Below are positions 9,471-64,000 of a stretch of 64,000 nucleotides of DNA, in pieces. Numbering within the stretch: the first letter of the stretch is position 1; every line of letters begins with the position of its first letter. The stretch is from Octopus sinensis (lineage: Eukaryota): the NCBI RefSeq assembly GCF_006345805.1, contig NW_021832586.1, forward strand, positions 1 through 64,000, in the 5' to 3' direction. A program made the translations under genes and the position numbers. Below the pieces are notes generated by a model. It saw only the letters and a program-made list of their open reading frames with translations, was not told the origin of the DNA and did not search any database.

Positions 9471-10003
9471 TAAATCTATATTAAACAAACAACACAATAA
9501 CTATACTTGAAACGACAGATATTTCGTCATAAATGAGATTATCATATTTATGATATATTATACGATAACTGTTGGCTCATAAATACAACGACGTGTGTAT
9601 GTGTTTTTCTAATCATATTGACACGTGTGTGCAGAGAACGTAAGTGTTGACACGTGAACGCGTGTTCAACGATTGTTGTGGTAAATAAATAGCTGTAAAT
9701 TGCTTGATGTGCAGTCAGTCGGGTGTAACCGATCAAAATTGTTGATTATACCGTCCACATTGAGGTTTTTGTACCTGTAGTATTTTAGTTATATTTCTAT
9801 TACACTTTTGTATTTGATTCTCCAGGGAAAATACGAGGTTATAGTTAAAGTGAGGAGCAGCGTGTGTATGTGTGTATATATATATATTGCCTTCAGTTCG
9901 TTTTATTATTATTATTATTATTTTATTATTATTATTATTATTATTATTATTATTATTATTATTATTTTATTATTATATTATTATTATTATTATTATTATT
10001 ATT

Positions 10004-12383
10004 CTATGTTTGACTTTTGCTTTATATTTGTACAAGTTGGCTCCAAGTCTCACCCAGAGACCTCAAGAGACAACAGGGTTGGAAGTTCATGTTGTTGTTA
10101 TGCCTAGTGTGCCATATATTTGGGGGTGGGGATGTTGTACTAATGAATGTCTAAAAAAAAAAAAAAAGTTTTTTTTTTTTAACCGAAAATTATGTTTGTT
10201 TTAAACCTTGAGATTACATAGAGAGTATTTTGCGTAGGATATGAGCAGTTCCCATGAGCACTATCCTTTGAACTTCTGCCATTTTTGGGTTTCCTGGTAT
10301 CTGAGTTAGGTAGCTATCAGCCCCTTTTGCTATCATTCCCAGGGCACCTATGACAACGTATTGTTTTAGTCTTCAGCTTCCACATTTTGCTGATTTCTAT
10401 TTCAAGATCTTTATATTTGCTCAGTTTTTGGTAGGTCTTGACAGATACGTTTATATCGATTGGGACAGTCATATCAATGAGGAGGCATGTTCTTTGTTTG
10501 AAGTCTTTCAATATGATGTCTGGCCTATTTGCATCTATCTTCCTGTCAGTTTGAATGGTGAAGTTCCAGAGGAGTGAGATGTGGTCATTTTCAAGCACTG
10601 GGGGTGGATTGTGTTCCCACCAGTTTTTTTCATGGGGCAAATCCAAGTTTTTACAGATTACCCAGTGAATATATTGTGCAGCTCTATCGTGCCTGTTGAG
10701 ATACTCTGTAGGCGCTAGAAGACTGCACTTGGAGACCACATGGTCAATGGTTTCATTTTGTTGCTTGCATACACGACACGTTGGACTGCTTCTGATCTTT
10801 AATATGTTGGCCTGGTAGTTTCTTGTTGGTAGGCATTGATCTTGAGCTGCTATGATAAACCCTTCTGTCTCAGATTTTAAGCCAGAGGCCATTAGCCATT
10901 GATGGGTCAGGGCTTTGTCGATATCTGCGTTATTCGCTCTCTTTGGGTATTTGCCATAGAGAGGTTTTTCTTGCCATTTATTATTCAGAATATCTAAGGC
11001 CGCAGTTTTGGCACGGGTTTTCATGCGCCTAGCTTTTTCTGTACTTGTTTCTTGTATGTCTATCTCTAATTCCGAAATTGGTTGTATTCGGAATTCACTT
11101 AGATATTCCTTTGCCTGTTTTGTGACTGAGTATGATGCTTTCTTGTTTTCATGTTTTGAGACAAGTTTTAACATCCAGTCCTCAGAGTTTTTCAGGTAGG
11201 TGTCTAGGCCAATTGTAGCAATCTTCATTGTTATTGCCAGTTGTAAAAGTCCACGGCCTCTCTCTTTTCTTGTCAGATAAAGTCGTTCTGTATCTGCTTT
11301 AGGGCGGTGCATTCTATGCATTGTCAACAGTTTCCTTATTTTTCTGTCGAGCTGACATATTTCAGTAATTGACCAGTTAACAATATTGAAACTGTAAGTC
11401 ACGACTGGTATAGCTAATGCATTGATCGCTTCGATCCTGTTTCTTGCATTCAGCTCTGTCTTGAGTATTGCTCTCACTCTTCGATAGCATTCTCTCCTGA
11501 TCCTTTCCTTCATCTCTGAATGCCTTATTCCGTTCCCTTCAATTACCCCCAGGTACATGTAGCTCTCCGCTGGGTCTAGTTCTTTTATGACATTCTGTTG
11601 GTCAAGGTTAACGTTAGATGTTTCTGTCATTTTTCCTTTGATAAAGGTAGCCTTTGCACATTTATCGAGGCCGAATTGCATTCTGATGTCGTCACTGAAT
11701 TGTTTGACTATCGCTAGTAAGCCCTTGAGTTGTTGATCATTTTTTGCAAAAAGCTTTAGATCATCCATGTAAACGAGATGATTTATATTTTTATCAAACA
11801 TTTTATATCCGTACTGCGCGTCATTGAGCAGCTTTGAGAGAGGTATTAAGGATAAACAAAAGAGGAGTTGTGACAGTGAGTCACCCTGGAAAATTCCACA
11901 CGAAATTTTTACATCACCAGCATTTAGGGATTCATTGTCACTGTTCAGAGTTAGTGTGGTTCTCCACGATCTCATACTTACAGTCAAGAAGTTTCGCAGA
12001 GTTGGTGCTACCTTATACATTTCAAGGCATTTCCTAATCCAGCTATGTGGTAGGCTATCAAAAGCGTTTTTATAGTTTATCCAGGCTATTGATAAGTTTT
12101 TGTGTCGTTTGTGACAATCTTCTAAGATCATCTTATTGATGAGTAGTTGGTCTTTACAGCCGTAGGATCCACGTTTACATCCTTTCTGTTCATTAGGGAA
12201 TATGCTGCTGTCTGTTAAATAACTATAGGTATATTCCGTCAGGACAGATGTTAGTGTTTTGTACATAGTTGTTAAGCAGGTTATGGGTCTATAGTTTTTT
12301 GGTTCATTTGTTTCTTCACTTTTTGGAAGCAGGAATGTTAACCCATTAACTAGCCAAGGAGGCATCCTACTAGGCATCCTACT
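10004..12383 (-). mobile_element. R4/Dong-like non-LTR retrotransposon family A, 5'-truncated, near-intact RT-REL ORF
   Basis: Intact 3' end with (AAT)n tail; (AAT)n also at the 5' junction; RT and REL motifs present. Confidence 0.92.
10214..12365 (-). pseudogene. RT + CCHC zinc finger + PD-(D/E)xK restriction-like endonuclease ORF (one frameshift near 10355)
   Basis: NYRPITCL, KNAFDSLPH, GIFQGDSLS, YMDD, CRVC..ETIDHVVSKC, RHD, RPDI..IDMTVP, KYKDL; natural stop ILRKILSM* at 10214. Confidence 0.9.
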
Positions 12384-12516
12384 TATTATTATTATTATTA
12401 TTATTATTATTATTATTATTATTATTATTATTATTATTATTATTATTATTATTATTATTATTATTATTGTTGTTATTATTATTATTATTATCATTATTAT
12501 TATTATTATTATTATT

Positions 12517-61593: not shown

Positions 61594-61667
61594 AATAATA
61601 ATAATAATAATAATAATAATAATAATAATAATAATAATAATAATAATAATAATAATAATAATAATAA

Positions 61668-64000
61668 TTCAGAGACAATGCCTGAATGGCTAACGAAGGG
61701 GAAAACCATCTTAATTCCCAAATCAAATGAGACAGCAAAACCAGAAAACTACAGACCAATAACCTGTCTCCCTACAATGTACAAGGCATTTACTGCAGTG
61801 ATATCTACTGAATAATAATATAATAATAATAATAATAAAATAATAATAATAATAATAATAATCATAATAATAATAAAATATAATAATAACAACAATAATA
61901 ATAATAATAATAATAATAATGATAAAAATAATAATAATAATAATAATAAAAATAATAATAATAATAATATAATAATAATAATAATAATAATAATAATAAT
62001 AATAATAATAATAATAAGGCTCATAAGGCTGTAAAGATCAACTAATGATTAATAAAGCCATAACTGAAGACAGCCATAGAAAGAAGAAAGGTCTCACTAT
62101 GGCCTGGATTGACTACAAAAAGGCGTTTGATAGCCTCCCCCACACATGGATCCTCGAAACACTAGCCATTAACAAAGTAGCACCAACAATCATAAAATTC
62201 ATAGAGCACTCTATGAATAAATGGCAAACAGTGTTACAGCTCAAAACAAACGAGGGACTCATAAAAACCAAAGTCATCCCCATTAAATGAGGAATATTCC
62301 AGGGAGATACGCTCTCTCCATTCCTTTTCTGCTTGGCACTGTCACCTCTATCTGATATGCTAAATAGAACTGGATGCGGATAAAAATGTTACGGCAAAAC
62401 GATCAGCCACCTTTTATATATGGATGACCTAAAACTCTACGCTGCAAATGACAAACAGCTGGAAACACTATTAAAGACAGTTCATGGATTTACCAAAGAA
62501 ATATATATGAAATTTGGATTAGAAAAATGCGCCAAAGTAACCATGAAAAGAGGAGAACTAGTTAAGCGTAACAACATCACACTAGATAAAACCAATGAAA
62601 TAAAAGATTTAGACCAAAACAAACTTACAAATATTAGGAATCCATGAACTAGATAAGACACACACACACAAATGAAAGAGAAGATAAAAAAAGAATATTA
62701 TAGACGAGTTAGATCAATACTAAAAACAGAGCTCATGCTAACAACAAGATAATAGGTATCAAACACTTAGCTGTCCCAGTTATAAGTTACAGCTACAATA
62801 TCCTTAACTGGACACGAAATAAACTGACCAAAATAGATAGGAAAACAAGAAAAATAATGACAGGATCTAGGATGCATCACCCAAAATCTGACATACAAAG
62901 ACTATATATACAACGTATAGAAGGTGGTAGAGGCCTTATGCAGCTGCAAAGCTACTATAAAATAACCACCATAGGACTGCAAAAATATCTACTTCTGAAG
63001 GAAGGAAAACTGATCCAGATAGCGGCAAAACACGTGCAAAACAAAAAACTGTTCTCAGTATTTCAGGAAGCTGACAAATATAAAGAAGAAATCATACCAC
63101 ATAATGAACATGAAGAAGAAGAAGAAGAAGAAGATGAAGAAACAACAAAAGCTATAAAACAAATGAAATCCAAACTAAAAATAGAACAGCAACGAACCAT
63201 GATAAAACGATGGCAAAAAGCCCCTTCATGGTAAATACTGGACTAAACTAAACGCAAAAGAAATAGACAAAGAAAAATCCCAGCAATGGCTGAGAAGCTC
63301 AGGACTCAAAGCAGAGACAGAGGGATTTTTAATTGCAGCACAAGACCAAAGCCTCCCCACCAGAAATTACCAAAAACATGTAATGAAAAGAAATATTACA
63401 AGTAACTGCAGAATATGTGGAGATGGACAAGAAACAATAAATCATATTATGCCCTGTCCTGGCTAAGAAGGAATATATTCACAGACATGACAGAGTTGGA
63501 ACTTACATACATTGGAAGCTATGCCAACATTATGGAATAACAACAGAAAAAAGATGGTATAGGCACAACCAGAAAAGGTCACAGAAAACGAGAAAGCAAC
63601 ATACTCTGGGATATGCCGATATACACACGATAGAGAAATTAAGGGCAACAGACCAGATATAGTTGTCAGAGATCATGAAGAAAAAAAAATGCTTTCTAAT
63701 TGATGTATCAATACCGGCAGATGACAACGTGTCTCTAAAAGAAATGGAGAAACTCTCAAAATACAAAGACCTGGAAATAGAGGTAACTAGAATGTGGAAT
63801 CTGAAAACAGAAACAATTCCTATCATAGAAGGTGCATTAGGCATGATAAAAAAATATTCAGACAAATACATAACAAAAACAACAGGACTTACAAACACAT
63901 ATAACATACAGAAAATTGCACTACAAGGCACTGCACACATCGTACACAGAACACTTTCCATACAATAACCATCAGAGCATCACAACAAATCACAGCACAT
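61668..64000 (+). mobile_element. R4/Dong family C copy interrupted at 61806-62016 by tactg+(AAT)n; runs to the window end
   Basis: Highly similar to 45174-47431 and has the same 5' junction. Confidence 0.9.

Follow-up and report, generated by a model that had tools for sequence, protein, structure and literature searches.

The 64,000-nt stretch of Octopus sinensis DNA analysed here (the window) very probably owes its polarised repeat arrays to Dong-type (R4-group) REL-endonuclease non-LTR retrotransposons which, together with a non-coding hitch-hiker of these elements termed U, integrate by TPRT into (TAA)n/(AAT)n microsatellites. Membership of the R4/Dong clade, which is part of the same judgement, rests on anatomy, target and literature.

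The tblastn queries used on the window were an intact natural ORF of family A (1,272 aa) and nine other relatives. Seventeen RT/REL copies or fragments were identified between 9.9 and 64 kb (Table 1), in agreement with the approximately 17 counted in an earlier sequence-only reading of this DNA. No Dong coding sequence was detected by tblastn at 14.4-21.4, 28.2-31.0 and 48.4-60.2 kb. Dong elements, U and AAT arrays account for roughly half of the 9.9-64 kb region, and a repeat search of 36.3-44.6 kb returned microsatellites only. The window contains no intact Dong copy; its longest open frame (746 aa, in c01) is 5'-truncated with a frameshift near the C-terminus and contains RVT_1, zf-RVT and CCHC/REL.

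Table 1. Elements, arrays and RT/REL coding pieces in the window (c01 to c17, RT/REL copies or fragments; aa positions refer to the 1,272-aa ORF)
Feature	Position	Strand	Details
RT/REL coding pieces (tblastn)	10217-12383, 12735-12884, 21930-22634, 23215-23691, 24381-25138, 25420-25739, 25849-26426, 27496-28079	-	
RT/REL coding pieces (tblastn)	13297-13781 + 14009-14283, 32356-36003, 40433-41095, 41587-42127, 44511-45041, 45184-47265, 61079-61468, 61669-61812, 62018-63965	+	
(AAT)n tail of c01	9905-10003	-	reads TTA on +
c01, family A, 5'-truncated	10004-12384	-	aa 553-1272; 97-98% aa identity with intact genomic copies; frameshift close to C-terminus
Array, c02, array	12385-13022	-	
c02, family A 3' fragment	12517-12909	-	aa 1223-1272 and 3' UTR; 95% to c01
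c03, lineage D fragment	13219-14378	+	aa ~1047-1244; sense (AAT)n at 14286-14378
Tail array and c04	21703-22794	-	c04 at 21828-22794, family C, aa 1037-1272
Arrays and c05	22795-23554	-	c05 at 23146-23554, deep lineage E, aa 1156-1272
U, 5'-truncated copy	23570-23888	-	non-coding
c06, family A-related subfamily	24208-25137	-	83% DNA identity to c01; aa 976-1258
Array, c07, c08, array	25138-26472	-	
c07, C-related	25302-25800	-	80%
c08, deep lineage E	25801-26427	-	
U, near full length	26473-27013	-	
c09 and its 5' array	27316-28152	-	
c09, B-related	27316-28083	-	72% to c10; aa 1073-1271
Three sense AAT arrays split by two ~235-nt inserts	31006-31891	+	second insert: 77% match to part of c03 over 146 nt
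c10, family B	31892-36177	+	aa 71-1272 matched; 94% to genomic copies; whole coding region present, open frames all <=201 aa; without ~1.3 kb of 5' leader
Array, U, array	36178-37056	+	U at 36358-36881
Decayed LINE, non-Dong	37137-40400	-	RT motifs 38672-39298, no CCHC/REL; own (AAT/AAC)n-type tail at 37137-37224
c11 and AAT/AAC/GAT array	40401-41581	+	
c11, A-related	40401-41290	+	86% to c01; aa 1049-1272
c12 and array	41582-42355	+	C-related, 74%; aa 1031-1230
Unclassified 1.35-kb non-coding segment, then 770-nt degenerate AAT array	42356-44476	+	200-nt stretch of the segment 75% like c08
c13, array, c14, array	44477-47883	+	
c13, family C	44477-45144	+	aa 1104-1272; 17-nt unit x8 at 5' end
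c14, family C	45169-47464	+	aa 556-1247
U element	47884-48363	+	
AAT arrays flanking unclassified 235-nt insert	60207-60751	+	
c15, internally deleted family-C copy	60752-61593	+	
Array, c16, array, c17	61594-64000	+	
c16	61669-61809	+	137 nt of family-C RT start fused to last 5 nt of 3' end, then tail
c17, family C	62016-64000	+	aa 621-1272; reaches window end

On the plus strand, arrays of at least four units read ATT in two regions (9.9-13.0 and 21.7-29.0 kb) and AAT in three (13.2-14.4, 31.0-48.4 and 60.2-62.0 kb). Since the reading of the arrays and the strand of the copies agree block by block, array polarity equals element strand. After tblastn HSPs had been joined in a merged annotation, a same-sense 3' array was found for 13 of 14 window fragments, the remaining one reaching the window end; 13 such arrays correspond to P ~2^-13 if orientations are independent. 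Most window copies also have (AAT)n on the sense strand at their 5' end. These results confirm the placement of (AAT)n in the sequence-only reading, on the sense strand at the 3' end and usually at the 5' end. Its further claim, that orientation is constant within each block, needs one correction: the plus block at 31-48.4 kb is broken at 37.14-40.4 kb by a minus-strand decayed non-Dong LINE of ~3.2 kb. That reading did not contain a further, short block in plus orientation (13.2-14.4 kb), which faces the 10-13 kb minus block head-to-head.

A tree of C-terminal sequences supported at least five lineages, A (100), B (99), C (100), D (96) and deep E (90), as had been claimed in the form of at least five families chained head-to-tail, and three lineages have young genomic copies (95-99%). 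U is ~520 nt long and is present in four copies in the window; a search for 3'-end sequence common to U and any window Dong lineage found none beyond the AAT tail. Its status as a hitch-hiker belongs to the same, very probable, overall explanation. Neighbouring copies, which lie head to tail with short arrays between them, are of different lineages and ages. This bears on the alternative in which the main source of the chains was the copying of units of element plus array, through duplication in place or through unequal crossing-over between AAT arrays. Arrays suit unequal exchange, and c13-c14 and c15-c16 are alike in their succession of 3' end, array and same 5' end, but this origin is highly improbable, because neighbours differ not only in lineage but also in 5' truncation point, and c13 and c15 are structurally different. 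Furthermore, c14 and c17 are 93% identical, which equals the 93-95% identity between c14 and copies on other chromosomes, so that their similarity is family background and not the mark of a local duplicate.

The genome-wide sample comprised 41 independent loci, in which 74 fragments were annotated. Arrays at the 3' end were same-sense for 58 fragments and opposite for none (4 had no array and 12 lay at the locus edge), and arrays at the 5' end were same-sense for 40 and opposite for one. Bystander fragments near the sampled copies were co-oriented at 19:1, as counted in the flanks of loci picked because a Dong copy is present. For family C and U, flanks were covered in the window and in the flanks of A and B loci. 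The genome-wide tabulation of flanks and orientation, which had been put forward as a check on the sequence-only reading, came out in its favor.

Each lineage has one fixed 3' end on (AAT)n, and the 5' ends are scattered, as in ordinary 5' truncation. In all 30 family-A loci fetched by genome search, sense (AAT)n followed the fixed 3' end (...AAAGTCAAACATAG), with a median length of 9.5 units for the pure run beyond it. Each of the 18 5' ends of this young family that could be read lay directly on sense (AAT)n, and microhomology at the 5' junctions averaged 1.94 nt compared with 0.50 nt expected, a value that none of 20,000 resamples reached. These 5' ends and the excess microhomology support the conclusion that the elements insert into (AAT)n and do not merely carry it as a tail, as the sequence-only reading had held. 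If insertion were instead near-random and the AAT arrays were the elements' own 3' tails, later expanded by slippage, (AAT)n would be found at the 3' end of every copy, as it is, and microsatellites are known to arise from the tails of LINEs (PMC3812793). However, random insertion predicts unrelated 5' flanks and random orientation of neighbors, and it is scarcely credible in view of the sense (AAT)n at the 5' flanks both of family A and of the fragments as a whole, the AAT microhomology, and the co-orientation of neighbors.

The elements contain a single ORF of ~1,230-1,270 aa encoding RT, CCHC and a PD..D..K nuclease, with no zinc finger. Pfam analysis of the 1,272-aa family-A frame placed RVT_1 at aa 572-829 (E 4.8e-28), and both RVT_1 and zf-RVT were matched in the window ORF as well as in this intact genomic ORF, in which Exo_endo_phos (APE-type endonuclease) was not found. 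CCHC is located at aa 1085 in family A and at aa 1042 in family B, which has an intact 1,229-aa frame in the genome, and an RPD..D..K motif is located at aa 1169 in family A. No C2H2 motif was found in the N-terminal 500 aa, which contain 4-5 Cys. The only relatives with solved structures in the PDB were R2 proteins, aligned from RT to REL (aa 505-1245, E 5e-28).

The AlphaFold model contains a helical N-terminal block (aa 119-211, pLDDT >95), the best structural matches of which were mostly of the Myb/SANT type: Sap1 (Z 6.8), Zeste (5.8), DMAP1 SANT (5.5 at 2.4 A), TRF1 (5.1) and the Myb region of R2Bm (4.8). The predicted block thus fits a Myb/SANT-like fold, with all matches at Z <8, a level common for small helical domains. 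Pfam gave no consistent Myb/SANT match in 20 homologue N-termini at E up to 10, and Foldseek against the PDB returned nothing significant for the N-terminal block.

Many NeSL elements carry a Ulp1/C48 protease, and NeSL elements have spliced-leader or other specific targets. Peptidase_C48, the mark of NeSL-type elements, was not found in the 1,272-aa ORF, and an atlas search returned RVT_1 clusters only, the nearest at 0.99 and those carrying C48 at 0.81. The absence of this protease is one of several findings against the alternative that these are REL-endonuclease LINEs of another clade, outside the R4/Dong group, that target (TAA)n independently. R4/Dong N-termini have no zinc fingers and contain a diverged Myb/SANT-like domain (PMC7998251); the elements described here also have no zinc finger, unlike R2, and their N-terminal block is a putative Myb/SANT-like fold (Z <8). 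Relatives in the arthropods Papilio machaon and Penaeus chinensis (32-41% aa identity) occupy the same niche, with sense (AAT)n on both flanks of each copy, and the repeat annotation of octopus genomes is rich in young Dong-R4 with almost no R2 or Hero (PMC13282606). An origin in another clade is accordingly quite improbable, even though target changes are known within REL LINEs (PMC5035012) and no HDV-like self-cleaving ribozyme of the kind that PMC3774820 reports for the 5' ends of Dong and R4 was found. Rfam searches of three full-length loci (E up to 1) gave low-complexity microRNA artefacts only, and our own descriptor, applied to A and B 5' ends, gave no strict and only weak AU-rich relaxed matches; HDV-like ribozymes are hard to detect by sequence, and the family-A 5' end used in the descriptor search was approximate. 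The 5' end of the Papilio copy was unlike the 5' primer that PMC3774820 gives for Dong of B. mori. Protein searches, with more than 1,000 relatives each, contained unnamed or 'uncharacterized' proteins and none named Dong, R4 or Rex6, and no B. mori protein was among the best 120 of the >1,000 matches listed in each search.

R2 is a REL-endonuclease LINE with established TPRT chemistry. By analogy with R2, the Dong-type endonuclease would nick the TTA strand, with which the RNA would pair through its (UAA)n 3' tail. Because of this pairing, only one orientation relative to the repeat would be possible, and all elements entering one array, or its descendants, would consequently be co-oriented. 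The target would survive insertion, as an upstream remainder and a downstream tract, usually of at least 6 pure units. With an array left on each side, later insertions of any lineage or of U could enter the tail or the 5' flank, and repeated entry of this kind would give rise to chains of several kb with a single polarity. The opposite blocks of the window would then represent separate opposite-strand arrays, head-to-head or parted by unrelated DNA.

Of 26 readable cases, there were 8 in which the array upstream of a young copy proved to be the 3' tail of a Dong copy already resident in the same orientation, and in 21 of 40 cases a further co-oriented Dong or U copy lay past the 3' array. As far as it is testable, the earlier proposal that the tail becomes the next landing site is supported by these counts. 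A 'self-propagating niche' can reasonably be inferred from what is known of TPRT chemistry and would involve no new mechanism. It is possible, and we suggest it only tentatively, that the Dong lineages and U form a positive-feedback community that produces a substantial share of octopus AAT microsatellites and strand-polarised multi-kb domains, with the A/B 5' leader as the community's promoter or processing signal. From a single (AAT)n tract, each insertion would then make two of the same orientation, and arrays and elements would amplify together as a result.

The branch of R4 that is specific for (TAA)n, Dong (Bombyx mori; DongAg, DongBg), resembles the octopus copies in 1) its single ORF with RT and C-terminal CCHC and REL, 2) an N-terminus with no zinc finger and a diverged Myb/SANT-like block, which is putative in the octopus copies, and 3) insertion into (TAA)n with a single orientation and repeat sequence on either side. 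Dong is known in molluscs as DongBg. In contrast to Dong, at least five lineages, three of which are young in the genome, occur here within a single window, and the 5' leaders are long (1.0-1.7 kb), with a motif common to families A and B (GCGGCTGGACG...GCTCTGA...GT[AG]AGTA) and no HDV-like ribozyme detected at the 5' end. R2 (8GH6, 8IBW, 9DOU, 9NL3; similarity E 1e-28 to 1e-17) has the same RT-to-REL layout and serves as the TPRT model for this case, but it has its own N-terminal C2H2 zinc finger(s) and a single 28S rDNA site that insertion disrupts, whereas the flanks found here are all AAT arrays, with no rDNA. The 3' tails of Alu and L1 (poly(A)) and of lepidopteran RTE likewise seed or extend microsatellites (PMC2887409, PMC3812793); here the repeat is the obligatory target too, and elements and arrays can therefore feed each other.

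For O. vulgaris, five recently active Dong-R4 families with 1,129 near-full-length insertions (4.7 Mb, ~4.2 kb each) are reported (PMC13282606). The window elements are most likely the same as the Dong-R4 families in the annotations of O. vulgaris and O. bimaculoides (PMC13282606, PMC9115989, PMC8967140), since these insertions match family A, which is 4.4-5.0 kb long with many copies at 95-98%. The (AAT)n target, the polarity rule and the multi-lineage chains are not described in the accessible parts of these papers.

The presence of Dong-R4 in octopus has already been published, as has the targeting of (TAA)n in molluscs, and the window illustrates clearly, with several lineages, a habit on record since 1993-2004 and does not hold a new kind of element; knowledge of the mechanism or the family is unchanged by these data. 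These are well-documented site-specific LINEs whose target outlasts insertion, which accounts for their co-oriented pile-ups and for the association of AAT tracts with Dong copies in the genomes of octopuses. Octopus AAT microsatellite markers will often adjoin repeated flanks, chains of array, element and array are best handled as units in repeat annotation, and the polarity rule offers a simple test for assembly errors and inversions.

A 5'-truncation hot spot at ~aa 553-556, where c01, c14, c16 and L025 start, was considered and dropped, because the family-A 5' ends are scattered, family B has no cluster at that place, and many family-C matches from query position 8 merely mirror the query start. 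In c15, an in-frame junction links the 5' end and the N-terminal Myb-like block with the C-terminal tail and 3' UTR; at least 40 genomic copies match the first 530 nt at 98-99% identity, and the deletion junction was found once only.

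The AAT-type arrays detected by Tandem Repeats Finder and a plain motif search are concentrated in the interval from 9.9 to 62 kb, which holds approximately 40 of them; the rest of the window has hardly any. The longest open frame in the window (746 aa) contains RVT_1 and zf-RVT domains, and its C-terminus carries a CCHC motif followed by RHD...RPD...D...K. A tblastn search was run with this frame, with a 1,272-aa relative from the genome whose frame is naturally intact, and with nine more distant relatives. Combined, these queries detected 17 coding copies or fragments of probable Dong-type (R4-group) elements in the window (c01 to c17, numbered from left to right), none of them intact, and for every one the element strand was the strand on which the adjoining arrays read AAT. 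Both results agree with the sequence-only reading, which had counted about 17 copies or fragments encoding a reverse transcriptase (RT) and a restriction-enzyme-like endonuclease (REL), with arrays polarised along the element strand. The orientation blocks it had described also matched the array polarity, but its plus block at 31-48.4 kb holds a minus-strand LINE that is not of the Dong type, and the plus mini-block formed by c03 had not been listed. Dong elements (~19.8 kb), four copies of the non-coding hitch-hiker element U (1.9 kb) and the arrays together occupy roughly half of the interval from 9.9 to 64 kb.

Positions and strands of the features described in the text (window coordinates unless a genomic locus is named)
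Feature	Position	Strand	Remark
Arrays reading ATT on the plus strand	9.9-13.0 and 21.7-29.0 kb		
Arrays reading AAT on the plus strand	13.2-14.4, 31.0-48.4 and 60.2-62.0 kb		
No Dong coding sequence by tblastn	14.4-21.4, 28.2-31.0 and 48.4-60.2 kb		
746-aa frame	10317-12557	-	
c03 mini-block	13.2-14.4 kb	+	faces the 10-13 kb minus block head-to-head
DDE_3 transposase fragment	15855-16298	-	E 3.4e-8; in the Dong-free gap between 14.4 kb and 21.7 kb
U	23570-23888	-	
U	26473-27013	-	
U	36358-36881	+	
U	47884-48363	+	
Decayed non-Dong LINE	37137-40400	-	3.2 kb
17-nt unit GCTATGCCAACATTATG	44479-44617	+	eight tandem copies, at the very point of 5' truncation in c13
Tandem repeat	53281-53882		unit ~172-197 nt, repeated 2.1-2.2 times with 95-97% matches; bordered by runs of (TA)n and of (CA)n
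c15	60752-61593	+	family C; 336-aa open frame with in-frame internal deletion
c16 mini-copy	61669-61809	+	137 nt of family-C RT start fused directly to last 5 nt of 3' end (TACTG)
Full-length family-A copy	L032:3500-8700		
A/B leader motif	L032:8383-8593	-	
A/B leader motif	L036:4229-4439	+	
A/B leader motif	L044:170-380	+	
A/B leader motif	L046:6776-6986	-	

The copies were grouped by DNA comparison and by a tree of the C-terminal 233 aa (58 rows, quick IQ-TREE run, SH-aLRT support), for which natural sequences with X at stops were used instead of consensus sequences and c07 was omitted as too short. Five supported lineages were recovered, and the earlier estimate of at least five families was therefore correct. 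Lineage A (support 100) comprises c01 and c02, with c11 (86%) and c06 (83%) as subfamilies; lineage B (99) comprises c10, with c09 at 72%; lineage C (100) comprises c04, c13, c14, c15 and c16/c17 at 91-97%, c07 at 80% and c12 at 74%; lineage D (96) is represented by c03; and c05 and c08 form a deep group, lineage E (90).

Searches of the 2.72-Gb assembly (13,516 contigs) found at least 65 copies of family A at 95-98% amino acid identity, with open frames of up to 1,313 aa, at least 40 copies of family B at 94-97%, with an intact 1,229-aa frame at one of the loci fetched, and at least 40 copies of family C at 93-95%, the 5' region of which has copies at 98-99%. In all 30 family-A loci fetched, the 3' end was fixed (...AAAGTCAAACATAG) and directly followed by sense (AAT)n, that is, AAT on the strand of the element's ORF; the pure AAT run behind it had a median of 9.5 units and reached at least 6 in nearly all copies. 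The 18 readable family-A 5' ends were scattered in position, as 5' truncation would give, and every one directly adjoined sense (AAT)n. Overlap with the repeat phase at these junctions averaged 1.94 nt against 0.50 nt expected, a value reached in none of 20,000 resamples.

The bias extended to the 74 fragments found in the window and 40 non-redundant loci, and to their neighbours. The 3' array had the same sense in 58 fragments and the opposite sense in none (four had no array and 12 ended at the locus edge); the 5' array had the same sense in 40 and the opposite sense in one (no array in 33). Bystander fragments around 41 seed copies were co-oriented 19:1, in loci chosen because a Dong copy was present. 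The flank and orientation bias postulated from the window thus holds genome-wide and reaches beyond the elements' own tails. The rare exceptions to co-orientation, at L026 (3' tail) and L040 (5' flank), are direct AAT-to-ATT switches inside one tract and a family-B copy that faces a Dong fragment of the opposite strand head-to-head.

Every insertion ends up flanked by an array on either side, and the DNA past these arrays was inspected for 40 young copies of families A and B. Upstream, 26 cases were readable, and in 8 of them the array was the 3' tail of a Dong copy already resident there, co-oriented and more diverged; past the 3' array, another co-oriented Dong or U copy was present in 21 of 40 cases (opposite in one). 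These counts indicate that young copies frequently insert into arrays that adjoin older copies belonging to other lineages, and they support, as far as local data reach, the earlier proposal that the tail of one element serves as the landing site of the next.

In these elements the 3' end is fixed and sits on (AAT)n, the truncated 5' end also meets (AAT)n, with microhomology, a single orientation relative to the repeat is used, and the chains mix lineages. By analogy with target-primed reverse transcription of the R2 type, the nuclease would nick the TTA strand, and the (UAA)n tail of the RNA would anneal to the nicked strand and be extended, which would fix the orientation; the 5' end would then be joined to the upstream AAT tract by microhomology. 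The opposite blocks in the window would represent separate tracts of opposite strand.

The decayed LINE within the plus block has RT motifs FRPITLLNTEFKI... and YADD, and neither CCHC nor REL was found in it. It carries its own (AAT/AAC)n-like tail, and the polarity switches from AAT to ATT at ~37.1 kb, where this tail meets the adjoining plus-sense array. Its motifs and microsatellite tail suggest, as a guess, that it may be RTE-like.

The U element (~520-545 nt) has fixed ends (5' ...CAGGCAGTGGCTCTC..., 3' ...GCTCTCTCACTC), is always placed in sense (AAT)n, and yielded at least 5,940 first-look candidates in the genome search. Apart from the AAT tail, its 3' end showed no similarity to any Dong lineage in the window, so that the tail would be the sole basis of any trans-mobilisation.

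Several family-C copies have unusual structures. In c15 the N-terminal Myb-like block (to approximately aa 192) is joined to the last ~70 aa and the 3' UTR. The possibility that c15 represents a non-autonomous subfamily was ruled out, since its deletion junction recurred in none of the 40 best genomic matches, which indicates a one-off event. The mini-copy c16, with the same 5' end as c14 and an AAT tail of 200 nt, looks like the product of an internal template jump soon after the start of reverse transcription. The 17-nt unit repeated at c13 corresponds to part of the family-C coding sequence; stuttering or a template switch at the 5' junction may have produced the repeats. Copies of two families, c01 (12374), c14 (45176), c16 (61669) and one at L025, start within three codons of each other (aa 553-556, the RT domain start). 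A 5'-start hot spot was considered, but the shared start was treated as coincidence because the cases are few and other 5' ends are scattered.

Full-length family A measures 4.4 kb between arrays at two loci; two others share a further leader (~650 nt in L032 and ~545 nt in L036), suggesting that family A may be ~5.0 kb long. In family B the leader is ~1.7 kb long and contains a 450-nt internal duplication. The single ORF encodes RT, CCHC and REL nuclease, and no C2H2 zinc finger was found in its first 500 aa; among proteins of solved structure, only R2 proteins are related to it (E 5e-28). AlphaFold confidently modelled a conserved block at the N-terminus (KW..ED...W....P......NKLANVRR) as a small helical domain, and the best VIA-align matches of this block were mostly Myb/SANT-type DNA-binding structures (Sap1, Zeste, GT-1, the DMAP1 SANT domain, TRF1/2 and the Myb region of R2Bm; Z 4.8-6.8). 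Neither Pfam nor Foldseek returned a Myb/SANT domain for the N-terminus. The predicted structure is suggestive, not decisive, of a Myb/SANT-like fold, which agrees with published R4/Dong N-termini (PMC7998251).

Whereas an HDV-like ribozyme is known from Dong and R4, none was found in the octopus elements with Rfam and our own descriptor, applied to full-length loci and the 5' ends of A and B. Families A and B share a motif near the 5' end of the leader, GCGGCTGGACG[T/C]G ... GCTCTGA ... CTGGAA.ATCTAC ... GT[AG]AGTA.TTGAA, although their coding DNA is only ~65% identical. The motif may act as a promoter or a processing signal, or may be a ribozyme that escaped recognition. Its last part resembles a splice donor. 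A Papilio relative also begins GCGGCC... after (TAA)n. Sense (AAT)n lies on both flanks of each of two relatives, one in Papilio machaon and one in Penaeus chinensis, at 32-41% identity.

The (TAA)n specificity of Dong dates from 1993-2004, a snail element included (PMC3812793), and is said to hold for "most insects, mollusks and cnidarians" (PMC7998251). Published work describes Dong-R4 as an abundant LINE group in cephalopods (PMC8967140), five recently active families with 1,129 insertions in O. vulgaris (PMC13282606), and a full-length consensus in O. bimaculoides (PMC9115989). Since both the targeting and the abundance are published, the window is a good multi-lineage example of an already known kind of element. 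Of the 31-mers sampled from the full-length family-A copy, 63-83% were present in 20 public runs from nine studies under four organism labels, which indicates near-identical copies in several labelled species or samples.
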